Positions 5,470 to 47,100 of a stretch of 64,000 nucleotides of DNA are shown in pieces. The stretch's first letter is position 1; each line of letters opens with the position of its first letter. The position numbers were made by a program, and so were the translations under genes. The notes below the pieces were generated by a model that did not search any database, was not told where the DNA came from, and was given only the letters and a program-made list of their open reading frames with translations. The stretch comes from Paragordius varius (Eukaryota; Animalia; Nematomorpha): contig OZ176053.1 in the NCBI GenBank assembly GCA_964247055.1, positions 6,758,001 through 6,822,000 on the forward strand, given 5' to 3'.

Positions 5470-8400
5470 ATATTCTTTCGACAAATGATTATGAGGATGA
5501 TGAAGTCAATATCATTACGAATTCAGACGTGAAAAGCGAAAACCAAAATTTATTCATACCACCACTTAAACATTGTAACAATACTAAAAATCAAAACATT
5601 CCTCAGCATAATAATTATGATAATATCCCAGTTGACGGGAAGCAGAAAGTTAATCAAAACACAGAATATAGGATGGGACTAAATCCTACGAAACTTTTAT
5701 TATTACACAACAATAATGACAATATAGTACATGATAATGTTAGGGATAATGAGACAATACAGGAAACTGCTTCGGTCAAAAAAATAATTCAGGGTAATGC
5801 CAATCATAGTTCTTCTTTTGGCGAAAGACTTATATCTACCACAAAATATGAAGGGAATAAAAAAAGGCCGCCGTCGCCGCCATGGGTAATTTGTAATAGA
5901 GAGTTCGCAAGCAAGCATAAAAACCTTGAATTATGGGGAGCATGTGAGAAAGTAGAAGATGTGATTGATAGTTACCAATTTCATAGTGTTAGTGATGAAC
6001 TAAATAGACCCAAATTTACGGCGGGAAAATTTTCTCCGCACAAAAGTTCATTAGAAGAAACCAGTGATGAAAGTCAGTGCCCTACAGAACAAATTTCTAA
6101 ACTACAAGATGATAATACTCCTAGTCCATCGTCACTGTCTCAAAGAAAAGTTATCAGCATTTTGTCACAATCTACCCCAGAAACTTTATCAAGTGCTCAC
6201 AGTCCTAGACCCGTGTTTGAAAATAGGGGTGATGGACAGGGCCTATCACCATCTAGTAATACAACCCTAATAACTCATCAAAAAACAGTCAAAAAAGACA
6301 TGGCGAACAATAAAAAGTTTTGTAAACGTATCAATAAAAAATCGCTTGAAACAACAGAATCTTGTATTGAAACTGAACCGCTAACATCAAAAACAATAGT
6401 TGGTCAGGCAACTACTGCACTTCCCGCACACCCTATGTTCAAACATGTCCGTTGTAAATTAGAGTCAGATGAACTTTGGAAAAAGTTCCATATGCTTGGG
6501 ACAGAAATGATTATAACAAAAACTGGAAGGTACTTTTCAATGAGAAAAGTAGTATTAAAAACTATTTATCGAAGTTTAAGGATATTATAATTATAACCTA
6601 AAATAACATAAGTAGCTAATGAGGCAAAAATTGAAGTATAATATCGATGGAATTCGATTTCGCAATTCATATAATTTTTATTAAAAATTAATAGATTTGA
6701 TCTGACACTTTTGACAACTTAACTATATTATTTTATGATAATTGAATGTTCATGAACATTTTTAATCCTATATAAAAAACAAGATAATTCAAATTGAATC
6801 GCTCACTAGTTACATTAAATATTTTATGCCGAGTTGAACAATATTCCAAAATTTTTGAGTGTCTTTTGTCCCATTAATCAGTTTATGGATCAAAGTACAG
6901 AGCTTTATTTTTAGTTTAGTTTGTCAATTTGTAAAATTTTCAGTGACTTTAATTCCTATTGTAAAAATGTAAGTATAAAACCATAATGAGACTGTTAAAA
7001 GAGATTTTTTTACATTTTTCGGTATTTTTATGGCTTTTTTCCCTTTGTGTTGTTGATTTTATTTTATTAATATGCGAAATTATATATGAGTTTTAATTTT
7101 TTAGTTATCATTTTATACATTACCTATTGTGGTAAGGAGATGATATATATATTATAAGTATATATATTGTTAACAATTTTGAACGAAAAAACGCTTTTTT
7201 AGATTTTAAAAATAATGTTAAACTTGTCTTTGTAGTATTAGTTATTTTAAACCAACAAACACTGTAATTTTGGATATACTTAGTTAGATCTTAAATACTT
7301 AATTGGTTCCTCATTCTTTATCAAATTCATATGAATAAGAAACTTGTGCTCTTTGATTAGCGTTAAAATAGCTATCTATTTTACTAATTATATTTTAAGA
7401 TGTATGAAATTATTTTTCCCGTAAACTTGAAGATTATTGATAATATACTTTTAGTAATTTTATGTTATGTAAGTAAAGAACTATATTTTGCAAGTAATAT
7501 TTTTTTTTAATGAAAAAAATATGTCAAACCCTTAATCCCCCCATTATTTTTGTTATTATATATATACATACACAGTTTGAGTCATTTTTTGTTTAAATTA
7601 AAGATTAATTTATATTGTATATGTTATTAATTTGGTTTGCTCCTTCTAAGAATTTTTTGACCAATTTATACTTCAGTTAACATAAAAGATGTTTTTAATT
7701 TGATAGATATTATATCGTATTACAATGGTGGTTTTACTTATGGGAAATTCTTTTATTTAATATTTCAAATTAGAGAGGAAACAAGGGAATTTTTAATATA
7801 ATAATTGGATTAATAAGTCATAATTCATTTGGCGAAAAGAATTAATTCTCTATTAACTTAACAAAAATACTTCTTTATCAGCTGGATGTATTAAATTAGA
7901 GGATTATTATTTGATAAATTTGTAGCTAAAAATCAAACTTTTATATTTGCAATATTTAAAAATATTTTTTCTTACAAAAAATATAAATGTTAATTTTAAA
8001 TTTCACAGACGAATGTTCCCAACCCTCCGAGTAAGTTTTCACGGTCATATAAACCATAACAGTATTGATCAAAACGTAAATTCTTTCGCTTCCTCTGAGC
8101 CCCAATCTCCAATGATACCAAACATTAAAGCAAAAAAGCAAAAAATCCAAGCAAAAAAATCCTCGAATTCAACATGGCTATCTAAGGATAACGAAAGCCA
8201 CACAACACAAATGGACTTAGAAAAGCACACTTTTGGTAATTTATTTTTGTATACTAAAGTAGATTTTATTTTGAAGTATATATGCCGTTATGGTATTTAA
8301 TTTTACATTATACAAAACAAAGCGAATAAAAATATGTAATGAAAAAAAAGCACAACACATCTTTTTTGGGATGATCTCTAATTTATTTAAGAGACACAGT

Positions 8401-9163
8401 TAATATAAGAGTGCTTTGGTAATTTAATTAAAAATTTTAAACGTTTAGTCGAGTCCTTGTTATACCGAGCGATTCGGTGTGCATATACCCTTGATAGCGC
8501 TACCCTTTCTCAAATATATTAATCAAAATTTTTTTAAATGGGTTCGATATCTTAAAACCATTTCACAATTATATCCACAATATACAGAGTTTCCTTTAAT
8601 GTCCAGCCCACAAGAGGGTAAATTCATACCCAGTTTTCCACCTCCAAACCAATCATATTTTGGTATATCATCCTCCTATTCATCTACTACACCGCATCCA
8701 ATCAAAACCAAAATGGATTTGAACGATGCAATATATCGTTTTAGTCCACAAATACCACCCAAGAACAACTGTTCCAATTCTAATAATCATACAACAAACA
8801 TAACAGTTAGCCCTATGATGAAATTATACGTTTTGCTTGACATTGTGCCCATGGATGGTAAACGGTATAGATATGCATACCATAAATCATGTTGGTTAGT
8901 TGCAGGAAAAGCAGATCCAACACCCCTAGATCGATTTTATACGCATCCAGATTCCCCTTTTGGCCCTGAACATTTGTTTGGATGTTCGATGAAATCGAAC
9001 CATCCCGGTCCCTCAGAATCCCATTGTACAATAAATGAAAATGTTAATGCTGATAATTCACAAAATAATGGCCAACATTTTTCTTCAGGTCATAGTATGG
9101 CGCCTCATATCATAAGTTTTGAGAAAGTGAAATTAACAAACAACGATGCAGATAAATTTGGAC

Positions 9164-9205
<42 letters not shown>

Positions 9206-11260
9206 TCTTAATGTGCTATTTATCGGTTATAAAATTAAAACTTAAAATAGTTTTTTTAGATTACAAGTGTTTTATACAGTAAAGAGAGCTATTATTATAA
9301 ACCATTTCGGTATTATAAATGAATGGTAAATTATGTACATGCCTGTTGCCACGTGTGTATTGGGCACATACTCTTTAATTAAACACTGTATTTTTCCAAA
9401 AAATTTTTTAAAATGTAATCCATACAAACAAAAGAAAATGTCATATATGGCAAGAGATATATAAATTAAATCCCCCTTTAGCAATTTAAAATACCAAAAA
9501 GGGTCATAAATTCTCGTTTACTTTAGTTTTATAAGTTTATAACTTAGTGCATTTAAAATAAACGTCAATCATACATTATTTATTTTGTCTATATATGTGT
9601 GTTAGATAATTTTAAACTCAATGCATAAATATCAACCAAGGATACATTTGGTAGCAACAGTAGAGGGTGAAACGCATTTAGATCTCCAAAAAACTCCCTT
9701 AAGCCAAAGACCCCATAAAACGTTTGTCTTCAAAGAAACGTCGTTCATGGCCGTCACAGCTTATCAAAATCAATTGGTATAATTAATGATAAATTTATTT
9801 TAAGTTTTGAAAACTTTTTTTATAAATACTTTTTAAAAGAATGCTTGCATCGCTTACAAACATATATTAAAATAGCCAAGGTGAAAAGTAATTAATAAAC
9901 GGGAGACATAAGATAGATGGATTAGTTCACAAAACTTAAAAATAAATCATGATGATTGTGAAAAAAATGAATTAATTAAAGCCATTTTTTCATTGGTATT
10001 TGTTTCGATGTCAAAACTTATTTAAAAATACGGTTTTATTTTGGTTCTTTATTTAAACGATTTTTATTTAGACATTGAAACTAAGGGATAGCCTAATTAT
10101 TTACATAAAATATGGATAAAGATCAAATTAAGCATCTTTATGATAAATAATGTAGAATCCCCACATCGAAAAAATAATTAAACAATATTTAAAAATAAGA
10201 TTTCGAAAAATATTCCACTTAATTTTTGGACCCATACCACGGTTCTCCGCATCAATCTAAATCAATGTCATTTATTTCCTACACCTGCATAAATTTTAAA
10301 TGTCCATTTTTCTTTGTTAGATTACCAAACTCAAAATTGACAGTAACCCATTTGCCAAAGGATTTAGAGACTCTTCGCGAATCACCGAATTCGATAAGTA
10401 CGTTTTTCTATTACATTATTATCTAACGCGTTATCGTATAAACTACTATCCGTTCAATATTACTATAACTACTGAATTTATAAGTCATTAATTTTAATAA
10501 AAAAATGGAAAGATATTTTATGCTTCTCATAGTCATTATTCGGATATAAAGAGTTGGGACATCTCAATAATGACTGTATCTTAGAGATTTAATTTTAACA
10601 TTTTTTACACTAATGTAATAATTTTTTAACCATGCTTATAATTTAAAATCCATAAATTTTAATATCAAATATAGCTTTGAAGCCCTTTTCCATCCCCGCA
10701 TGATGTTAGGTTCACCCGGAGCGTTAATCTCAGGTGGAGCATCCATGTATGGTGGGGTCAGTAACAACCCGCTACAATTGAGTTTACCCCATCTCTACTA
10801 TTACTATACACAACATCAACAAAATGCCCAATTTAATTTTCATGATTTAAATAATCTGTTTTCCTCTACACTAAATGCACCGAAAATGTCACTTGGCACA
10901 ACTTCTAATAGCGAGGAAACAAAAATCAATGACAATACTCCAAATGTGAATGTGAAAAAAATTGAATTAAGCCATTCCCCAACATCTCCAGACAACAAAA
11001 AAAGATTGGAGAATGAAATGGTAAACCCAACATTTCAACCCATAACGTCCTCTCCAATCATACAATATTATGCCGCCTTGTTTGCAGCCCATCAAAATCA
11101 AAATCAACAGCAGCAAGAACACTTTAAACATATATTTAATTCAGCGTCAACTCAAATGAACAATTTAAATTCCTGTACTATATCATCAGAAACAAATACT
11201 ATAACACAAAATGATGTGATAACTTGTAATATTGTTAATTCTCAAGCACACACAAATTAA
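5470..11260 (+). CDS. TBX20: T-box transcription factor, Tbx20/H15/midline subfamily (5' end not located)
   Basis: Phase-consistent GT-AG exons: 5470-6529, 8009-8235, 8588-9165, 9606-9776, 10321-10397, 10675-11260 (TAA). Motifs [132 protein letters not shown] and GFRDSSR are Tbx20 signatures. The start-codon exon was not found. Confidence 0.93.
9166..9201. repeat. (TA)n microsatellite starting at the donor of a Tbx20 intron
   Basis: GTATATATA... begins at the GT of intron 9166-9605. Other (TA)n tracts lie near 2212, 21522, 28244, 48896 and 63728. Confidence 0.95.
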
Positions 11261-12675: not shown

Positions 12676-14197
12676 ATGTCGACACCACCAACTTATTTTA
12701 ACTTTAAGCTTCTGATTATTTTATCTCTCGCATGCATTATATTGTCAGTTAAAAGTCATCATGATAACAAAGTAACATTACCAATTCGAAAAAGACTTTG
12801 TGATAATGATAAAGGGTCTTTGACATGTTCACATGTAATGCGTATAAAAAGGCAAGTCCCCAACAATCACCAAAAACTCTTTCTTCGACAACCCTCGGCC
12901 CAAGGACCCAGGCAACCTTGGCAAAAAAGGCCAGGCCCTGCCAACAGAGTTCCAAATCAAAGGAGAGTAGTTGCATCCGTGACTCAAAAAGGTCCAATGC
13001 ATCCACGGAAAATGATGACTCAGCAGAGAATATTGAATGTTGCTCGGCAATCTAGGAGAACTAAAGGGATTCCCATCTACAGGAGTCGTAGAACACGTGG
13101 TCCAAACGTTGCGCGGACCAGACGAATGAAGCAAACTCTAGGGCCAAACATTATACGGTCACGTCGTACGCGTGGACAAAACATTATACGGACCCGACGA
13201 ATACGTAACCAGAACAATGTTGTAAGGACACGAAGAACACCGGCTGCCGGGATTAATAGATTTAACATTCGAACTCGCCGTCCTAAAGCAATGCGTGGAA
13301 ATCCACAACGTCACAATATGCAAATTCAAAGATCCGGAATAAGTCAACAGGAATTGCCTATACAGAGACACCAAGTTGCAGATGAGCACAGTCAAATGAA
13401 TCAAAACCAACAAATGGATGAAGATTTATCACCTCCTCAAAACTCCGATGAAAGTATGGAACAACCGGTAGAAGATAATGAGGTTGATACCAACGATCAA
13501 TTAACCTTCAATGATAATTCATTATCCATGCCTGCTAATAAGAAAATGGATGTAGATAATTGGAACAATCCACAAAGCAATAACGGAGTAAGAGACATGG
13601 ATATGCAACAAAATATTCAGAGTAACAGAAATACTGGTGGTATGTCGAATTCTCATTTCCAGAATCAACCTTCTTTCTACCAAAAATATAATGACCAATA
13701 TGAGAGGTATCTTAATTATCTAAAATCCAAAAGTAATTCGTCATCAGACGACTCACACTTTCATCACCACCCAAATCCGCAACATCCCAACAAAATTATA
13801 AATGTCATTTATAACACAAACGATAACAAAAATGAAAATGTTAATAAAAATGAAAATAAAAATTTAAATACAAACACTAACACAAATGGCCAAAATATGA
13901 ATAATCAGGCCCTAGGCTCACAACAAGGGCCGTACTTTGGGCTTAATAACATGGTACCACATCAGTTTTATATTCCTTATATTCCATCTGCATATTCCAA
14001 TAATTTACCTAGCAATGGGAATGTATCATCTGATCATAAACCGAATAATCAAATTAATATGTTGCAGCCAACGTCAGAGCCAATGGGTAAACCTTCAAGT
14101 ACAGGCAAAACTAAAAATCCTCCTACAAAAAAAGTATCAAATGATAATGACCTGATGAATGATAAAAAGATAGCAAAATCATATATTGAAGAACAGG
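12676..14197 (+). CDS. Exon 1 of a secreted protein of unknown family (signal peptide, furin-type sites, Arg-rich repeats, Q/N/D-rich region)
   Basis: Stop-free frame of about 507 codons in AT-rich DNA. It starts with ATG and a hydrophobic leader (FKLLIILSLACIILSVKS), followed by IRKR and RIKR sites. It ends at a strong donor G|GTAAGT (phase 1). Confidence 0.8.
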
Positions 14198-15637
14198 GTA
14201 AGTGCGTTTTCTGGAAATTATTTCATAATAAACATAAAACAAAAAGTTAGTTTATAGCTGTTTTCACGGTATGGAGACGAGTTATAGAGATTATAAAATT
14301 TTTTTGCAAGAATTCACAATAGTTATCTGTGCTTGAAACGCTTTAAAATATTTAGCTGCTTCCAATTTTCAGTATTACTCTTTCATGCCCAAATTTCCAA
14401 AATTATTTTACTTTCACATTTTGCAACTATTTATTTTACTATACCCAAGTTGAAAGTTAATTCTGAGATGTAAGGGGTTTATTTTTGATATTTCTAGCAA
14501 CACTATTATATAACTTTTAAAGCGGCTACAAAAGAAAATACACTTTTTATTAATTACATTTGATAATGCGGGTAAAAAACGTGACTTAGTAAAAGGCACT
14601 TGGAGAGAGGAGGAAACATTAGGCGAAGGCGAGTTTCAATTATGATAATGTTCTATTACAAGTCGAAATTTATCTATATACGTATTAATTGCTGATTAAC
14701 TCTGAATTTATTATACTTGCTTGATTTATGATGATCCAAAAACGACCCTGTTTGCGAGATTGTAAATCTCCAATTTTTTGGCCATTTATTAGAAAAATTA
14801 GTTGAAGTAGGTGGAATTAACCTTTTATTCGCATAATATATTTTTACTCTATTAATAAGTTTGTTATCATTTAAAACAATTCCGTTTGTGATTAATTTGT
14901 GGGGTTTGATCTAACGAGATTTTTGTTTTCAATCGATAAAGAGGCCTATTGATTATCCATTTTACCTGAAAACAGTTCCATAACGGTTCTAAAATAGCCG
15001 TAGTGCTTAGCAAGGTTTTTAAAATATAAAATCGGTTTAAATAGTGGCATTTAAAAACGAAAATTCCCCTTTTGTTTGCACCTGTTATGCAGTTTATATG
15101 ATAAACCACATGTAATCCAGGATTCCAGCACAAATGGCTTAGCGAGCCGCATTTTCTAACTAAATTGGTCGCACTAGAATATATGGGAATATATATTATA
15201 TAACATTTAAATATAAGACTGTGAAAAATTAAAAAAACAATATAACTACTATTTACACTAATTTTTGCTAGTATTTGCCTTGGACCTTGATTTTTGAAAA
15301 TTATGGAATTTTGGTTATATTTGTAATTTTTCGAAAATTCGAGGATCGCCTAACATACTCTATCTGGGCACCCGGCTGTAATATTATTTTATCACTAGGT
15401 AAGGTGTAACTAAATAATAAATTGAATAAAATTGATTTTGTATATTTTTGAACAATATGAGTTATTCATTTAATATTGCAAGAACGTAATCATTTATTAC
15501 AGAAAGATATTGTTGGCTTATATTACACCAAATTTTTTACCTTTCAACAAATAATTGTTGGTATGTATAAGCTAAGAAAAAACTAGCTGTATTTTTACTG
15601 CTACTGCCGTAAACCATAATTTTAATTTTATTTTTAG

Positions 15638-35051: not shown

Positions 35052-37920
35052 CTACCTTAAATAAATATTATTTTTTAAAAATATTAATATTTAGCTAAAT
35101 GTTATGCGTAAAGTTTTTTCATACAATAAAACATTCATTTAAAAGAGATATTTAATTAGATCCATATGAACAAAAAGTACTTTTATTTCAATCTTGATAA
35201 ATATATTCCGCCTAATAAAATAATTGGGCAATGAATATTTTTGTTGATATATTGTAGAATTTTATTATATATTTGCTATTTTTTGACTTCACATCGATAT
35301 CGATTTCCATGTTCATAGGACGATTGGTATTTGATCCATTATTTAATGTTTATGTTTAAAATTAATTCCATTTATCAGGTATAGAATGAGGGAGGCCCTT
35401 AATGCTCAAAACAATTTTGAGTTTAGCAAGCGTTAATGAAGGTTATACATAACGGATAATTAACATTGTTAAAGATAGCGAAAAATATTAGATTGTAGGA
35501 ATCTAACCTATAATCTCGTATGAAACATAATAAAACATGATAATCAGGCATTGAATGCGCCGAGCAATAATGACAAGTGGTAGAGGGCGCATTCATAAGG
35601 TTTTTTTCCTTTCTCTTGGCACTCCTTCTTAGGTGCAGGGCGAATTCTTCTTTTAAAAATTAAGTTTTTTATTTGGTGTAATGGTTTTGACAGACCCCAG
35701 CGGATTATATGTAATCAGTCACCCCTTTAATTTCTTTATTTATGTTACTACATCTTTTAACACATAGATAAAAACTGACGCAGAATAATAAGTTTCGATT
35801 TGATAATAAAAGGTCTAATTTATTACATGTTTTAAGAAATCAAACATGTAAATAATGTTAAATGTTGTTTTTGCTCCTTTTATATGAATAATTTTTGGGG
35901 TAAAAATCCCTAGAGCCTAAAATTAGTATATAAAAGATATTTTTAAACACGATTACATTATTCTGATATATTAATTGAAAAAATTATTCTTTTAGGGTTT
36001 ACATAAATGAAAAAGAATGTAAATCAATTGAAACAAAAAAATAAAAAAAACTTAAGAAATATCCAAGACTACTATTATAAATATAATTAAGTTAATATAT
36101 TTTATACAACACACATTCATATTTTACAGTATTCGAGCTATTTAAAAGAGTCCCAAAAACATTTGGCAGCTAAAATCTATGGTAAACCTGTGTTTACAAA
36201 TTCCTCTTTTTTATAAAATTTTGTAATGCGCCAAAGGCTATAGAAAGTATGCTTTTATTTGCCTTATATATATCAATCTATAAAATAATATTTACAATCA
36301 TAATGATCTAGAAACAAGATCATTAATTTCATATAATTATATGTTTATGATTAACAAATAAGTCCAAAGTTTAGCTTTTGTGAAGTTTGAAGATAGTCCT
36401 ATGAGGGAATTTCTTAATAATAATTAAAAATTATACTTGGGCCAAATTTATAAATATATGTTCTATGGGCTTTTAAGCCTATTATACGTAAAACATGTAA
36501 AATACAAAAAATCCCTCTCCGATCTTATAGCCGACATCCTTAATTTTTAAAAGAGCAGAAAAACCTGACAAAATTGATTATGGTTAAATTTTTTTTGGGT
36601 GGTTTTGTATCCAAAAATGTCAAAAGAATCTGTAGCGCATCTTAATTTCTTATGAATTTGTAAAAATGTAGTTCAAATATTCTCACCTCAAACATTTACG
36701 CCGCTAATTTTTTTTTATATTTTTTAAATAGCTAATACAACCACAAATAAATGTTTATTATGGTTGAAGATATAATTAATTATTGAACAGCTTTATCACA
36801 TTTACAGAGTGTCTGGATGTTTCTTGATATAGCTGTTTGCCTCAAACGTATTTGGAATTAGCCAATTCGAAAGCTAGAAGTTAAAAACTGTAAAAAATAT
36901 AAGTTTTTCTAATCAGTATAATAGTGTTAATAATAGAAGTTTGACCAAAACAAAGGGTAAAAAATCAATTAATATAAGTGTCATATAAAAGTATCCAAAA
37001 TGTCATTGTCAACAAAAAAATGAAAAGGTGATGAAGTGTTAATAAATTATTATTAAACTATTATAAAACCTTTAACGGATTTTAAGCCTTAACTATTTAA
37101 AAGCTTTAGGTTCGGATTCAAATAATTTTAAACTGGTTTAACCCAAATTTTATTTCATAAGATCTTACGTTAAATGCACTAGAAATTTCCTTTCTATATC
37201 ATATTTAACATTTCCATTTTATGAGTTGATATTTCCGGGTGGTTTCCTACCCTAGAACTTAAAGTAATTCAACTGTTTAGAAAGTTGTTTTGATTAAAAT
37301 ATGATAATCAAAATTTCTCATGTATTAAATATTTTATACTTTTTACATTTTATGGCTTCTATTGCCCTAATTCAGATAGCTTTCGATTAAGATTAAAAAT
37401 TTACAAGTAACTTGTAATATAAAACCTATCCAAATGATTTATATTTAATCATAATAAACATGGCTGTTGTATTCGCAATTTAAAAAATCTAAAAAAAATG
37501 GTGAAAGTTTGAGATGAGGATATTTGGCATATTTTAAATATTATTTTAATCATGCGCATAAAAGGTAAAGGATAGCATATTTTTGATATAAACCAATGTT
37601 AAAAATATTTTTTAAGATATTTTTAAATGTCCCTAAAATATATTACCCTGTATTCATGTAACAAATATTTGGCAAACCAAGTTAGTTAGGACTTTTGTCT
37701 TTTTTAAAAGAAAACGAAATGTTTTAACATAATTTTTAAAAGCTTAAAAAAGCTTATAAGGAATTTTAAATCTAATTTAAAAGGTTTTAAAATTTATACA
37801 GTATATAATTGAATTTTGATGGGCTACCATGTCAGTAATATTTGTATTTATTATGTTTCCCATACCTTGGTAATCTATTGACGAACCAATCGTATCAATA
37901 CAAATACACGCTTTATCGAT

Positions 37921-38993
37921 ATGCGAAATACTCTCGTTTACATTTTTTATTTGGCATCTATCTCGTTAACATTTATATATTCTAAAGAGAATAAATGTGA
38001 AGGTTTTTTTATATTCTATATTTAAGTGTGTGAAAATGTATTTAATAAGTATCTTGAAGAATATTCACCTTACACAACCAATGAATCGTTTGAAACATTC
38101 CGTGACAATTTTCATAAATTTTGTGAAAAACTTACAGTTAAGGAGGAAAAAAATTTAGTTTTTTATTTATAATATTTAGTGTCACACTTTAGGTGCATAT
38201 CCAAATTCTATGGAATCGTTCATGAAAACTGTATATGATAAACTAAATTTGTTTTCTACTTCTGATATAATTTGCAAGAAATTACAAGATATAAAAGGAG
38301 TCTGCACCAAATACGGTATTTTATTTTGCATCATACATTTACCTTTTAACCCCTTTTTAATGCTTTGACATGATTTTTAATTTTATGAATCAATAATAAT
38401 ATCACCCAAATATATACTACATTTATAAAATATATATACATCAACATTATATTGTTAAAAACCGATATTCATTAAAACGGTAAGTATTTTATTTTATTAA
38501 ACTTTTTTTTTATTTCGATTTTACTTTAGCCTTTTAATTGTTATAACCTCACAAAACTCTTTATTTTCATTATCCCTGCAAGGGTGCATAGTCTTTGTGG
38601 AACCAAAATCATGAGCCTTTTATTAAAACGATTCGTTACCATTTTTAAAAATTTGGGCAATTTATTTGGCTTTTTGTAAATTTAAACATTTTGATCAACT
38701 CCTTTTTAATAATATATGGAACTGGAATCAAGAAAAAAATCTTGAACCATAATCACAAACGATTTTAATTTAAATCCCTGACATCAATATGTTAACTCGA
38801 TTATTATATTTATATAGAAGTTTTACCGGATTTCAGTAAGCCAGAGAAGTTGAGTGTTAAACAATTGAAAAAAATACTTAGTAACTGGGGAGTCCGTTGT
38901 GATGGCTGTCTCGAAAAAACAGATTTTGTAAAACGATTCGAAGAAGTCAAAGATCAATATATAAAAACAGAGACACCAAAAAATGAACTATAA
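37921..38993 (+). CDS. MANF: MANF/ARMET (CDNF family) ER-resident neurotrophic factor
   Basis: Exons 37921-38002, 38027-38157, 38180-38315, 38818-38993. The protein has a signal peptide, then CEVC, KFC...[49 protein letters not shown], and a KDEL-like C-terminus KNEL*. It is absent from the ORF track because of its tiny introns. Confidence 0.95.
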
Positions 38994-39249
38994 TATTTTT
39001 ATACTTAATAATTTTAAGAATAAGGGGATATATGAATTATTCTTGTCATAGTTTGGTTGTTATTTTACGGAAAATATATTGTAAATTATTATCTGATGCA
39101 CATCATAATATTATAACATTCTTATAAATGCTCAATATGTAAATAATATTTTAATAAATTTTGATTTTCATGTTAATTTTGCCACAATATCTTGGTGACA
39201 AAATAACATTAGACTCCTCAAATAATAGCGCAATTAACGCCAGAATAAT

Positions 39250-39700
39250 CGTACCTGGGGAAAATACCATCAGCTAAGATACATACTAAAACAAAAGCAC
39301 ATCCCTCAAAAATTTATAAAATGGGTATAAGACCAGTTTTGAAGGCCACAGAAACCATGGCATTAACACAAACTCTCAAGAGAAACGTTTCATCAGCGCT
39401 GAAAATCACATACTACGCCTGATGTCAACGCAACTTAATCACCAAGATCTCCGCAATTACATACTGGGATCAATAAACAATTCAAAAGAATGAGATACTA
39501 CGGTTACCTTGACTGTATGAATCCTGATAATCCGATCAGAACCTCATTTGAATAATCCCGCCTGGATACAATAAACCCGATCGTCCTCGTTTAACTTGGG
39601 TTAAAAAAGGTTGATCGGGATTTTTAACAACTTAACCTCCTAAAAACAGATTGTATTGATAAAGAACTATTTCACAAAAAGCTGGATAGTTTACGATGAT
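39250..39700 (+). mobile_element. Decayed RTE-like LINE 3' fragment
   Basis: Remnant translation IYKMGIRPVL...ETMALT, KRMRYYGYLDCMNPD and DRPRLTWVK matches the C-terminal part of RTE ORF2. Confidence 0.65.
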
Positions 39701-40026
39701 GTGCCATCAACTCATTATTAAACAACAACAAATTGTGTTAATATATATAATTTCGGTTTGGTAAAAATTAGGTGACTAATATAATTTGTAAGACACACGT
39801 AGTTTTAAAATGCTATAAAGACTAAGATATAGTTGTGTATATTGATATTTTTCACCGTTGTATAATATTAAATTAACACTTTTTAGGGACAAAATAAGCG
39901 TTATTTTCTATAAAAAAATTTATTGGATAATTGCAATTTATTGATTATACGTTAGATTGGAATGATAAAGGTGTTCAAACATGATTTATCATAAAAATCT
40001 TTGATTTAAAACATTACTTTTCAATC

Positions 40027-43000
40027 TTAAAGTATAGATAGTGCAGCGGAAAGAAAATTTTCATATGAGAATGTAGCTTGTCCGTTGCGATATGTATCAA
40101 ATTTAGCAAATTCATTTGTGAGATTCTAACATAATTAAAATAAATGTTGAGATATAGCTAAATATTTATATATTTATAACAAGTATTACATTCTAATATA
40201 AATGTAATTGCGTCCACATAAAACGGATTATATAGTTGACTCTCAAATTCCTAATTTTTCTATTTTATATTAAAACAAATAGTAAAAAAATCTCGATTGC
40301 TGTATCTAATGTTTGACCCATCTATATATGCTTAGACGAAAAGTTAATTTAAAAAGTTTATCATTTTGGTGAATCCATGTGCACTAACATGGCAGGAAAA
40401 TAAACTTTTTTATTAAAATTCGGTGTAAACAGTGGACATCATGACCCCATTTCATGATGAGCTTTTTTTTTATAAAAATAGCGCTTTTTCACTAATTAGA
40501 TAGTGTTGAATATATAAATTCTCAAATTATTAATCAAGGGTTAATTATTATAATCTTTTTGAAAACACCTTGAAAAGCTTTATAAAACCCCTAAAGAGTC
40601 TAAAATAAAAAAATCAATCAGTTTTTAAATTTTAAAAAAAGCTCCAGAATCTTAATAAATATATATTATTGAATAAAAAGTTAATTTTATAATGACATAT
40701 CTATTTTTCTCATAATCGGGGTATTATGGAAAGGGTAGGATGTAAAAAAGGAAATCAGTCAAGAAGGATTATATTCGGTTTTATTGAAGCAGTTTGATTA
40801 GCATATGGAGAATGTAGTACACAGGATTGTGCATTTGACTGCTTTTTTAAAAAAGCCCGGTCAGACCATGGTCATGACCACTTTTTACATAGGTAAATAT
40901 CATGCGATATTGGATTGTGAAAATAATGTCATGTTTTTTCTTAAAAGTTTGTATTATACATTTTTTTTTATTTTATTATTTATAAATTTCAATCAAATTT
41001 ATACAAAAATTTTGTTTTTAAATAAATTTTGCTAAATGTTTGTGGCCTTCAGAATCTGCATATACATAGCTAATAATGCAAGATATTTCAAATAAAATTG
41101 TACATAGCTTGTTTTACACTTACTTCCAATTATGAAATATTTTTTCATTTTATTGGTTCTCATATATGGAAAAATTGCATATTTTGCAATGTGCTTGATT
41201 GTTTTTCGAAATAACTGGATATGCTTAAATGCTAATGTTATAAGGATGCATGTTTAACAATTTTATATTTTTTAAAAATATAAAAAAACAAAAAATCTCA
41301 TTATCACTCTTCCAATAAAATATACCAACTTTCAAAAAGCAGCTGTTTTTTTAAATGACCATGGTCAAAAAATAAATAGTCATTGACTTGGTCAGCACAA
41401 CCCTAGTAGTACAATTAATATGCATTTAAAATTACCGTAAAAATTTTAAGTTCATTTATCCAATGGCACTCCTGTTTCCAAAAGCACGTAAATGATTGAA
41501 AAAAAGTTATGACATCAGATAAAAAAATAACTAAAATATCCATGTTTTTGTGACACCAAGAAAAATTGTTGTGCTCATTAAAAAAACTAATTGATACAAT
41601 AAATACTAAAATACAAAGTTGGATATAAGAAAAATCGAATATATTTAAAATACAGGAGTTATTTATTATTAAAAATTATAGATTCATAATTGCGAAAAGC
41701 ACCTATCAATGTTTACATCAATAAAAGGTATTTGCCCAACCATTTCGCATGCAATCAAACCTAGAATACCAAAAGTCAATCAGCTATACATGAACATATA
41801 AGATATCTTAAAAAAAATATATTAAGTCGGTGTCCATTCAATCTTTAAATACGCGAGTTGTATGACGATAAAACTGGAATAAATACTACTAAATTATGGA
41901 AAAGTAATGATATTACTATGAAAAATAAAGTAAGAGTTTTGAAATGCATGGTTTTTCTGGTAGCGAGTAATGCTGCAAAAGGTTGAGCATTATAACTTGA
42001 GAAAGTGTTGAATATAAGGAGGTCTGATAAGGTTAAGACTGAAACAATAAAAGAAAAATTAGATGAGAGCTTAATGGAAACTATAATAAAAAGTTTACAT
42101 ATATAAGGCACATTTTAAAAAGTACATCCCTTAAGAAAGATTTGATTTTTGGGAAAGTTTGAAAGAAAAAAGGAAGATAATATTAAAATGGCTGGAGACT
42201 GTAAAGAAGGAATTTGGTACAAGTATAACTGAATTAAAGGATATGGGAAAGATACAAAGTGAGGGAAGTAGTTAGTTTAATTTCCAAGGAGTGGGAACCG
42301 ACCTTAGTAATTCCTGCCTACCTACCCTATATTACAATCACAAAACTGTAAAAATACCAACATAATATATGAACTAATATTGTAATTTTTGTTTATTGCG
42401 TTGTTAAAATTTGAAAAGAAAAATTTAAATTTGCCTCCATTTTTTAAAAAAAAGAAAAAATTGAAATTATTCTCCAGTTTTCTTCTATAGAAACTTTGAT
42501 GGAATGACATTATTACTATAATTCATATTAGTCTACAAAATCACATTTTAAGGGTAATATGTGGTATATATTAAGATTAATCCCCTTAAAGTAACCCTTT
42601 GTTAATTAACATAGATGATATAATTCTGAATAAATTATTATTAAAAAATAAATTATATTTTAAGTAAATAATATTAATTTTTTATTTTACCAAGATATTT
42701 TGATAAATTAAATATGTATTTATTTTTTTCACATTTTTCGCGGGCCGGATTCTTCTTTTATAAAGACGCATGCGGCCCGAGTGTTGCAACACCTGGTCTA
42801 AGGGTTTCTCATACGAAGAGCGGTCTTTATAGGGAATTTTAACAGAATTTCTTTAATCTGGTATTGAAATCGCAGGATTTTCTGCCACGTTTTCGAAAAA
42901 AATTAACAATTTTATATGGTATCACTGGTTATTATATAATTGCAAAGATATGATGTCTTATAATGTTCAGAGTATGATATTTTTCCGTGAAATCGATATA

Positions 43001-43841
43001 AATAATTTTTTTGGGATTATTCCTTCACCAAAAAAACTTCATGTAACGGAATTAAAAACAAAACCATATCATATTTAATAGAGAAAAAAAATAAAAACAA
43101 AAATAAATTTTAGACTAGACGTTTCACAAAAAGGTGGCCAATGTAGGGAAATCAGTAACCTAATAATGATGAAGAGTTTGATTAATATAAGTTTTATAAA
43201 ATAATTACTCTACGAATGTAAAACCTAATTTTACATAACCAATCAAATAATTATTATCAAAATTAAACACAATTCTAAAATACCAATTTAATTCCAAGAT
43301 AAAGATATTATATATACTATGTTTAATTTGTAATTATAGTAAACGTAATTTATATACTTGTAATGCAAGACAGCATCTAATAAAGTCATCAAAGTAAATC
43401 ATATTTTTTCGCTGGCGATCAAATTTAAGAAATAATATTTGGTATATGGTGTCGCTTAAACGAAAACCTGTAATTATTATTAAATAAACCTTGCGTTTGT
43501 AATAATTGTTTAAGTTCATCCTTAGATATAGAACCACTTTTATCCTTATCACATATTTGGAAAATTTTTTGCCAATCATTAATATAATTCCATAAATTTT
43601 GAAATTCATTAAAATTAAGTTGTCCTTTGTAATTTTGATCAAATTTGGACATGAGCATTTTTATAGTTTCCATATGAAATGGTTCCCATGTCCCTTAAAT
43701 TAAAAATATGCATACCATTTGATAAACATTGCTGCAATTCGGTACAACTTATTAATCCACTCCCATCTTTATCAACGCTATTGTATTTTTACAAATTATT
43801 TACTGATTAAAAATGTTTTTCAATTGAGGATCATATGACAT
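40027..43841 (-). CDS. PDCD6: Programmed cell death protein 6 / ALG-2 (penta-EF-hand protein)
   Basis: Exons 43841-43804, 43777-43716, 43693-43490, 43467-43358, 40125-40027. Spliced product (~170 aa): [39 protein letters not shown]...NLWNYINDWQKIFQICDKDKSGSISKDELKQ...GFRLSD...KFDRQRKNMIYFDDFIRCCLALQNLTNEFAKFDTYRNGQATFSYENFLSAALSIL*. The short N-terminus favours PDCD6 over peflin, sorcin or grancalcin. Confidence 0.95.
40822..41405. mobile_element. hAT MITE (TAGGGTTG-type TIR) inside PDCD6 intron 4
   Basis: Perfect 8-bp TSD GTAGTACA (40814-21 and 41406-13); ends with CAACCCTA. It is colinear with the copy at 53762-54378. Confidence 0.88.
41860..42270 (+). mobile_element. Decayed RTE/BovB-like LINE 3' fragment inside PDCD6 intron 4
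   Basis: RHILKSTSLKKDLIFGKV and KWLETVKKEFGTSITELKDM resemble the RTE ORF2 C-terminus (GHILRR.SLEKDLMLGKVEG...RWLD.IKE). Confidence 0.7.
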
Positions 43842-44922
43842 TTTAAAATACGGCTTCACTTTTCACCGTATAACAAATATTTTTCACCTATTTGCATCTT
43901 CCCAATACTTATATAGTTCATGGGACCCTATTGGTTCACCAATTCGAAGGGGTGTGCCCCGTCCTATTGTCATTGTCAACATAAACCGGCGGTTTAGTAT
44001 TACGCCACAGTTTTTAACTCTTTACTCTTATATAACGATTTTATAAAATGGGTTTTTCAATAACATTTTTATCATATCCGTTTATTGATTTGCAAATACG
44101 GCCTAATTTAAAATAATCAACAATTATTTTATCAATATAATGTTATATCCCTTTTGAGCGTTTATAACATTGGTACTTGAACCAGGGCTCTCGGGCTGCA
44201 TGCCATCCCAAAAGCTCCTTTTTATGCGCCTGAATTCATTTTATTTTTGAAGTACTAATTAGATGTTTTAATATATGCCTGTGTCAAACAGTATGCAAAA
44301 AGCACCCAAAAAATAAAGGGCTAAAAAATTTATCTTGTCCCAAGGGCCGTTCACCATATAATACCGATAAACTTTATAGCCGTTTGAAACATTAGATATT
44401 TATACCCAAAATAAATACATAAAATTTTTCTAAATAATTTAGGAGCATAAGCTGTACAATATATTTTGTTATTCTAGGATGCGGGGCCCTTGAGAAAAGA
44501 TAATATTTTTTGCAGCCCTTTTTTGGTAATAACCACTGATCAATAAAAAAATTTATATCTATAAAAAATTTGGTTATCTTAGAAGTGATTTGTATATGAG
44601 CTATACATGACGGAATATAATGGCCAATATACATTTAAAAAAAGCTTTCAAATGACCTGATAATGCTGATAGTGATGTGTAAAATTATGTCTTCCGCATC
44701 GATATATTTAGTTAACATAAATAAATCAAAAATCAAGTGAATGACTAGAAATTCATATAATATTAACTGCTTGTTTAAATGAGTGGATTACTAACTTCGT
44801 TTAATAACCTAGTTAATACGTTTCAGCTGGAAATCAAATTTTATGCAATTCGCAGCATTTTTTCTAGACTTCCGCGCGATAAAAATAAAATTCATAATAT
44901 GCATGTATGTATGCCTGTAGAT

Positions 44923-47100
44923 CGGTGGCACTCAAACCACGGCTCGCGGGCCGCATGAGGCCCTAAGAGTCCTTTAAAATTGCCATATGACCATATTGAT
45001 ACTTAGATGATTTTTTTTATTGATGAATCTAAAAAACACTAAACAAATTTTCGCTTATTTTAATAGTAATTTATTTTCTTTAGATTTAATTTTGGTAATT
45101 TTTATTTTTTACCCAATTTGGAAAAATATAATCTACATTAAATTTTAAAATTTTGGCACACGTTGTTTCTGTTTCTGTATTCTATTTTCTTTTCTATTTC
45201 GAAATTTTTATTGCATTCCTTTTTTGTATTTAAGCAAGCCTTTCACCCAAACTTGCATATACATATTAACATAATTAATTTCGACCTGTTTTTTTATAGC
45301 AGAATTCAAATTATCCTATTTTTTAAAAAAAATTTACATAATATTTTAACATATATTCAAAGAATGACATCTAATGCTAAAAAACGTAGATTTCCCGATG
45401 AAAATCGCCCCTTAAAAATATTGGGAAGAAAAATTTTTTGTCGTTTTTAAAGAAAAATGTTGTTACCTGCTTTATATGTAAGGACAACAAAATTATAAAA
45501 AAATCAATATGAAAAACATCGCGATGTGCGCTCTTCGTGAGATTTTGCAACGACAACATATTCAACGAAGACTATTTAAAATTTTTAAATTTTTACCAAT
45601 GAATAACCAAGAAAGGAAGTAATTTTCTCGAAATAATTAGCACTTTTTTCGATAGTAATGATATATCTATGAAAAAATTGGTTTTGATCTGCTCAGATGG
45701 CTGTCCCTCTATGATAGAAAAAAGGATTTATTCCTCTTTAAACAAATATAATTTGCAAAATATTTTATCCTTTCACTGCTTTGTTCATCAGCAAAACTTG
45801 GTTTCGCGTTTAAAAGATGAATCACTCAATTCAGTAATTAAAACGATTGTGGATATAGTTAACCACATCCGTGGCAGAGAAATCAACCGGCGTAAATTCA
45901 ATTATGAGAGATATCCACAGTGAGTTTGATGATATTCTTCTGTACACTGCTGTGAGATGGCTAAGCCTTAAAAAGTATTAAATAGATTATTTGTTTTAAG
46001 ACATGAAATTCTATTATTTATAAAAGATAACAGAAAGTTTGACGAGTAAATTAATAGTGACAAACGGTTGGTTTTATTAGCCTACCTTTACGACATTACT
46101 TACAAGCTTAGTATTTTTAATAAAGGTTTTTAAGGGAGAAAAATAATAACCCAATTCGCTAATTAAATATTTGCTTTTGACTAAAAATTTATAATATATA
46201 AACAAAATTTTATATTTAAACACTCCTATCTAACACTTAAAACGATTCATTAAGAAATAGTGGAATTTACCGCGGATATTGATTTAGTAATAGACAAGCA
46301 TTTAATATTTTTGTATGATGAGATGAAATTCTGTTTTCAAGAATTAATAACTATTAAAATTGATTAAAACTCGCTGAAAATCCATGATAAGGATATATCC
46401 AATATTAAGCAACTTGAACATTTCGGTTTTAATCAGGCGCATATTATTGAACAAGATTTTAAATGATTTCAATTTGGAGTCTATATTCAAGGAGAATCGT
46501 AGAGAAGAAAGATTTGTATAATTTTGGCATAATGTGCCAAATAAATATGTAAAAAAATGTGCTCAGGTTATCCCAACTGTTTTTCCCCAACTTACACGTG
46601 AGAGTGGCATATTTAAATATGAAATATGTCAAGAATACATATAAAAATCGCTTAACCGATGATCATATGGACGTCGTATAAAGATTGGCCTGTCATGAGG
46701 CAAAAACCAATTTGTCAAAAATTATTGGTTAATATCAAAATTTGTTATCAAAATATTTTTTTTCAAAATGGTGCCATTCTCTTTTTTAATGTTTTGGGAT
46801 GATATATAAGGTTTGTGAGTCATTTGCTTCAGTTTCTGGAACATTGGCTGCATTAATCCTTTTTTGTTATTCAATTCAAAGTAAACGAGGCCGACCACCG
46901 ATGATGTGGTTGGATATCATAAAAGAGGAGACTAAAATGACATTGAGCGATCTCAATCTAGTGGTAAAAGATAGAAGAAAGTGGAAAGAAATAGTGAAAA
47001 CTTTATCCAAAAAGTCGTTTACGACTTAGGAATAACCAACCAACCAAATGGTGCCAAACGAGTTTTTAGCTGGATTTACGTGCGATCCGCGAAAAATTTA
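44923..47100 (+). mobile_element. Decayed hAT transposon, Buster/Charlie/SPIN group (GTF2IRD2-like transposase pseudogene)
   Basis: 5' TIR-like end CGGTGGCACTCAAAC. Transposase remnants MTSNAKKRRF, KLVLICSDGCPSM, FHCFVHQQNL, IVNHIRGREINRRKF, LLYTAVRWLS, LAYLYDI. Many frameshifts; the 3' boundary is approximate. Confidence 0.85.
46777..47045 (+). mobile_element. 5'-truncated RTE LINE insertion with TSD
   Basis: KRGRPPMMWLDIIKEETKMTLSDL...KDRRKWKEIV is followed by an (ACCA)n-type tail. An 11-bp TSD AAATGGTGCCA flanks it (46766-76 and 47046-56). Confidence 0.85.

Follow-up and report, generated by a model that had tools for sequence, protein, structure and literature searches.

Three GT..AG segments of 22 to 26 nucleotides as probable shrunken introns in a PDCD6/ALG-2 gene of the horsehair worm Paragordius varius

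The question raised by this locus is whether three very short segments that break the reading frame of a PDCD6/ALG-2 gene are spliceosomal introns, or whether they are remnants, errors or insertions that happen to look like introns. The gene lies on the minus strand of a 64-kb stretch of DNA, referred to below as the window. With a probability of about 0.9, the three segments are U2-type GT-AG spliceosomal introns, shrunken from ancestral bilaterian introns, of a working PDCD6/ALG-2 gene.

The gene model and its product

The three segments, of 26, 22 and 22 nt, were reproduced letter for letter at the minus-strand coordinates given by the original prediction, and their removal restores the PDCD6 frame. 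None of these lengths is a multiple of 3, and without the three segments four pieces lying in different frames become a single open frame of 414 nt starting from the ATG at 43841. The features of the gene, in the order of transcription, are as follows.

43804..43841, minus strand: PDCD6 exon 1, 38 nt coding with the ATG at 43841; the MSY start aligns with MAY/MSF starts of orthologues
43778..43803, minus strand: PDCD6 micro-intron 1, 26 nt, GT..AG, phase 2; same column and phase in fish, snail and tapeworm
43716..43777, minus strand: PDCD6 exon 2, 62 nt, EF-hand 1 loop, profile match; equal in length to fish exon 2 and snail exon 3
43694..43715, minus strand: PDCD6 micro-intron 2, 22 nt, GT..AG, phase 1; same column and phase in fish and snail
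43490..43693, minus strand: PDCD6 exon 3, 204 nt, equal to the ancestral 45 + 159 nt
43468..43489, minus strand: PDCD6 micro-intron 3, 22 nt, GT..AG, phase 1; same column and phase in fish, snail, tapeworm and nematode
43358..43467, minus strand: PDCD6 exon 4, 110 nt, profile match; equal in length to the fish, snail and tapeworm counterpart
40126..43357, minus strand: PDCD6 intron 4, 3,232 nt, GT..AG, phase 0; same column and phase in fish, snail and tapeworm
40027..40125, minus strand: PDCD6 exon 5, 96 nt and a TAA stop, EF-hand 5, profile match (E 9.3e-6), AG acceptor

As to the extent of the gene, the original prediction was right in placing three micro-introns inside 43468-43803, but its model stopped at exon 4, and a fifth exon lies beyond the 3.2-kb intron. 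This exon was found by searching the six-frame translation of 40000-46000 with a PDCD6 profile, in which the C-terminus of PDCD6 matched 32 codons at 40125-40030, preceded by the AG acceptor and followed by the TAA. Another EF5-like peptide at 43297-43205 (ELNWYF...) was considered as the last exon and rejected, being reached by no canonical intron and having no significant profile score. The coding sequence is thus made up of five exons (38, 62, 204, 110 and 96+3 nt), 513 nt in all, with a product of 170 aa. A BLAST search with the 5′ part of the gene revealed no PDCD6 paralogue in the 64-kb window, and no Rfam RNA family was matched within it.

The identification of the product as PDCD6, made at first from the sequence alone, is borne out by both structure and protein databases. 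Residues 7-169 align without a gap to the human ALG-2/PDCD6 structures (3AAK/2ZN9) with an E value of 2.5e-53, and PDCD6 chains match at 1e-52 to 1e-53, whereas sorcin, grancalcin and calpain reach 1e-31 to 1e-35. Every named protein among the top 46 database matches is a PDCD6, with 42-59% identity over most of the query; the closest PDCD6 protein listed is that of a fish (59%), and peflin is 36% identical. The product is matched by EF-hand Pfam families, and five EF-hand repeats align along the whole length with the ALG-2 structures. The predicted canonical Ca-binding loops of EF1 and EF3, a 12-residue loop and DKDKSGSISKDE, align with the loops of the orthologues. The penta-EF-hand arrangement is shared with human and other vertebrate PDCD6 (PDB 2ZN9, 3AAK, 1HQV), whereas the N-terminal tail is very short here, with 12 residues ahead of the first EF-hand helix region. 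The Gly/Pro-rich tail is not present in the product, whose N-terminus is just MSYDPQ; the wasp and tapeworm orthologues are likewise short at this end, and the tail was treated as a variable feature of PDCD6 and not as disqualifying.

The window (28% GC) contains about 9.5 GT..AG pairs with a spacing of 20-30 nt in each kb of a strand. Chance pairs being this common, the mere presence of such segments is no evidence for introns, and it is their placement that counts. All sets of up to four GT..AG removals of 15-60 nt each that open the PDCD6 frame were therefore enumerated, and the resulting 108 sets were ranked by their score against a profile built from 22 PDCD6 orthologues. The predicted set of three introns came out on top with 197.7 bits, followed by 176.0 bits for the second. 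The chance of finding GT and AG at the six fixed positions is about (0.044 x 0.039)^3, or roughly 5e-9, given the dinucleotide frequencies of the window. Retention of any single PDCD6 micro-intron leads to a premature stop, at codon 14 for intron 1, codon 59 for intron 2 and codon 123 for intron 3; since the frame is shifted and translation ends early, unspliced PDCD6 copies would give no full-length protein. The micro-introns have an AT content of 84% and the exons 71%.

Two other open regions of the window were recorded. On the plus strand at 5529-9282, a T-box domain (Pfam PF00907) is divided between two long ORFs (E 6.5e-7 and 2.8e-13), with an unusually long open stretch separating its parts; the presence of a T-box gene supports an animal origin of the DNA. 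A 524-aa ORF with an ATG start at 12676-14250, also on the plus strand, belongs to no Pfam family and has no match among 5.8 billion proteins.

Intron positions in other animals and the segments in sequenced DNA

Intron positions were compared with those of four annotated PDCD6 loci (Arapaima, Biomphalaria, Echinococcus and Pristionchus), whose proteins were mapped exactly onto their DNA. The introns of the window gene lie at columns 44, 65, 133 and 170 of the joint alignment in phases 2, 1, 1 and 0, and these columns and phases are identical in the fish Arapaima and the snail Biomphalaria. Three of the four positions are common to the tapeworm Echinococcus and one of the four to the nematode Pristionchus. 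Exon lengths agree as well: the coding exons measure 77, 62, 45, 159, 110 and 96 nt in Arapaima, the final coding exons 62, 45, 159, 110 and 99 nt in Biomphalaria, and the coding exons 47, 107, 159, 110 and 99 nt in Echinococcus. The ancestral intron at column 80 is missing in the window, where the flanking exons are fused (45+159 = 204 nt). The original prediction had stated that the short segments stand where vertebrate PDCD6 has introns, and the annotated gene models agree with it, four introns sharing column and phase with fish and snail. Since fish and snail show these very columns, phases and exon lengths, the PDCD6 micro-introns are best read as shrunken ancestral introns. In comparison with vertebrate PDCD6, one ancestral intron has been lost here and three have shrunk from hundreds of bases to 22-26, while the intron positions are those of the fish gene.

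Contigs of four sequencing runs (X2, X5, X11 and X12) were aligned to 37905-43900 at 90% likeness. X2 and X5 behave as DNA runs, as intergenic sequence is covered and contigs fall in two haplotype-like depth classes. Insertion or deletion errors are conceivable when AT-rich DNA is assembled from long reads into a draft, and the segments might on that account be artefacts absent from the real genome, an objection that the original prediction had itself named. Contigs from other samples nevertheless run through two of the three without a gap: record 31 of X5 spans 43723-43900 and includes intron 1, and record 15 of X12, at low depth and under another organism label, spans 43584-43731 and includes intron 2. 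Among the gaps listed for any run, none at PDCD6 measures 22 or 26 nt, and errors are unlikely to come as pieces of 22-26 nt with GT..AG ends at ancestral intron positions. Assembly error is accordingly given a negligible probability, and the segments are taken as genuine parts of the genome.

The X12 run (organism label D) consists over 38395-43731 of low-depth pieces, mostly of 151 nt, several of them identical to the window and some from intergenic DNA; parasite DNA within a sample taken from a host may account for these pieces, as may a difference in labelling.

The original prediction placed the gene in a transposon-rich genome, and a repeat-rich setting is indeed found at the locus itself. 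A repeat within PDCD6 intron 4, at about 40705-41504, has an X2 word depth of about 1e5 as against a few hundred over single-copy parts, which is several hundred times single-copy depth. A second repeat at 39305-39704 has an X2 word depth of 1.3e4. Both repeats show many variant joints and loose ends and are covered by X11 at low depth, and a palindromic TGACCCGGTCAATTGACCGG-like motif is situated near 41384-41395 among these joints and loose ends.

Transcript evidence and splice signals

Whether segments of this size are removed from RNA could be read directly in the neighbouring MANF gene, about 5.5 kb away, which contains introns of the same class.

38003..38026, plus strand: MANF micro-intron 1, 24 nt, GT..AG; absent from an X11 contig, kept in X2 and X5
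38158..38179, plus strand: MANF micro-intron 2, 22 nt, GT..AG; also absent from that X11 contig, present in X2 and X5
38315..38816, plus strand: MANF intron 3, 502 nt, GT..AG; likewise missing from that X11 contig, which joins 38314 directly to 38817

The X11 contig has a length of 578 nt and a depth of 712, covers 37951-38314 and 38817-39076, and is missing exactly 24 nt at 38000 and 22 nt at 38157; within alignment ambiguity these small gaps match the GT..AG segments listed above. The skipping of the 502-nt intron shows the contig to be a spliced transcript. Over most single-copy intergenic DNA the X11 depth is zero, and over MANF exons it is high; from this exon-only coverage and the spliced contig we infer that X11 is an RNA run. 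The shortened MANF forms have a depth of 0 in X2 and X5, the latter from the same sample as X11, and they are therefore neither a retrocopy in the DNA nor the result of removal from the DNA of most cells. The MANF contig is direct evidence that this species removes introns of 22-24 nt from RNA, and with it the earlier proposal that the spliceosome of this animal handles introns of about 22 nt gains its support.

Without its micro-introns MANF encodes an intact protein of 174 aa that begins like a signal peptide and ends in KNEL; its homologues carry ARMET domains, and none of the matches in the protein database exceeds 30% identity. The 24-nt intron is the only one of the five micro-introns divisible by 3, and it holds an in-frame TAA, so that for all five examined (three in PDCD6, two in MANF) retention means a frameshift or an in-frame stop. 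At position 38073 in MANF exon 2, X5 has T at full depth and X11, from the same sample, agrees with the window in having C; the two codons (TAC/TAT) are synonymous, and the difference probably reflects polymorphism within pooled or heterozygous material and not editing. MANF (37921-39076, plus strand) and PDCD6 (40027-43841, minus strand) are convergent, with about 950 nt and a repeat between the last MANF-covered base (39076) and the PDCD6 stop (40027).

A further possibility is a removal of the micro-introns that bypasses the ordinary spliceosome, either by precise DNA excision in expressing cells or by a cytoplasmic cut of the IRE1/XBP1 type. A length of 22 nt would leave very little space between the splice sites for early spliceosome complexes, and there is a precedent in XBP1, whose 26-nt intron is the classic tiny intron of animals. 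The GT..AG ends and the conserved spliceosomal positions and phases are against such a route, as are the zero depth of the shortened MANF form in DNA of the same sample and the fact that the very X11 contig without the two micro-introns is also without the ordinary 502-nt GT..AG intron. Removal by these means is very improbable, and the PDCD6 micro-introns are probably removed by the ordinary spliceosome.

On PDCD6 itself X11 has a depth of 0 at every exon, although the record filters apply and such a hole proves nothing; in the X11 word index, 0.47 of the sampled words of PDCD6 exon 3 are present, which hints at expression. The lack of RNA-like contigs would fit a decaying or unexpressed pseudogene in which the segments are frameshifting insertions that resemble introns by chance, and so would the presence of X2 and X5 contigs with a 1-nt deletion in exon 2, at 43768, inside an A run and in an AAA codon belonging to the EF1 loop. 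X2 and X5 contigs also have a 1-nt deletion at 43796 in intron 1. Both deletions could come from an allele with a frameshift, from a paralogous copy in another part of the genome or from the alignment of contigs at 90% likeness. Insertions by decay would, however, have had to fall three times at the exact column and phase of an ancestral intron and to end in GT..AG each time. The spliced frame is moreover open for 170 codons and gapless to human ALG-2 with both predicted canonical Ca-binding loops intact, the exon 3 words are found in X11, and the sole exon variant seen in other samples, GAA to GAG at 43683, is synonymous; the remaining variants shown near the gene affect intron 2 and the sequence ahead of the ATG. 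A pseudogene is on balance improbable, if somewhat less so than a non-spliceosomal route. The frame, the orthology and the positions, together with the removal of the same class of intron in MANF, point to a working PDCD6 gene whose three micro-introns would likewise be spliced from its RNA.

The 5′ ends of the PDCD6 introns 1-3 are GTAAAT, GTATGC and GTTTAT, and both MANF micro-introns begin with GTTTTT; the 3′ ends are ATAG, TAAG and ACAG in PDCD6 and TAAG and TTAG in MANF. Stretches resembling TAAT, CAAT or CTAT are found by eye 5-9 nt ahead of the AG in the five introns, an observation offered as description and not as statistics. A normal pyrimidine tract does not fit into 22 nt, and recognition of the splice sites across the intron is for this reason probable. 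Such recognition would be carried out by the ordinary U2-type spliceosome in the absence of a pyrimidine tract, with a minimal GT, an A-rich stretch and the AG as possible cues, and the A-rich stretch about 5-9 nt before the AG may act as a candidate branch site. In both genes the introns on the 5′ side are the micro-introns and the last intron is the long one (3,232 nt in PDCD6 and 502 nt in MANF); proximity to the cap may, speculatively, help in their recognition.

Hairworm micro-introns among known tiny-intron systems

In the unicellular lineages of ciliates and nucleomorphs almost every intron is tiny, and these introns resemble those described here in size class and in that retention causes a frameshift or an in-frame stop. 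For animals, the original prediction had rightly named dicyemids among the lineages with introns of 20-30 nt but omitted the myxobolid myxozoans. According to a study of 51 animal genomes (PMC13644364, Mol Biol Evol, September 2026), introns below 30 nt are confined to myxobolid myxozoans and Dicyema japonicum, with a median intron of 22-27 nt in Dicyema and the myxobolids; Nematomorpha go unmentioned in its main text. As that study describes them, the introns of these parasitic animals are like the present ones in being of the GT-AG type and 20-27 nt long, in keeping conserved positions with conserved exons on either side, and in having weak splice-site motifs, reduced to 'GTa...AG' with a weak A run shortly before the AG (PMC13644364). 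They differ from the hairworm introns in that here one and the same gene holds micro-introns, at the 5′ positions, and a long intron, which is repeat-filled and 3,232 nt long in PDCD6 and 502 nt long in MANF.

The introns below 30 nt come from the two genes examined and measure 26, 22 and 22 nt in PDCD6 and 24 and 22 nt in MANF. A long intron in each of the two genes suggests a length distribution of two classes and not a uniform shortening. No report of micro-introns in hairworms was found in the searchable literature. The genome preprint of the hairworm Gordionus montsenyensis gives 26.93% GC, 63.8% repeats and 71.6% BUSCO completeness and does not contain the word 'intron'; the 28% GC and the repeat load of the window are consistent with its figures for GC and repeats.

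It is conceivable, at somewhat less than even odds, that horsehair worms are a third independent animal lineage with introns below 30 nt, in which two classes exist side by side, introns of 21-30 nt at the 5′ ends of genes and kb-sized, repeat-filled introns beside them, in a genome of roughly 290 Mb. On the same tentative footing, many hairworm gene models may be broken, as the minimum intron length in common aligners and gene finders is near or above 21-30 nt, and part of the low BUSCO score and of the 'rampant gene loss' of the phylum could in that case stem from annotation. Such default minima would frameshift genes of this kind, which bears on the gene loss reported for nematomorphs (Gordionus BUSCO 71.6%). 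If hairworms are indeed such a third lineage, their large genome with its many repeats would mean that extreme intron shrinkage has no need of overall genome compaction, and they would offer a natural system in which one spliceosome deals with introns of 22 nt and of several kb within a single gene.
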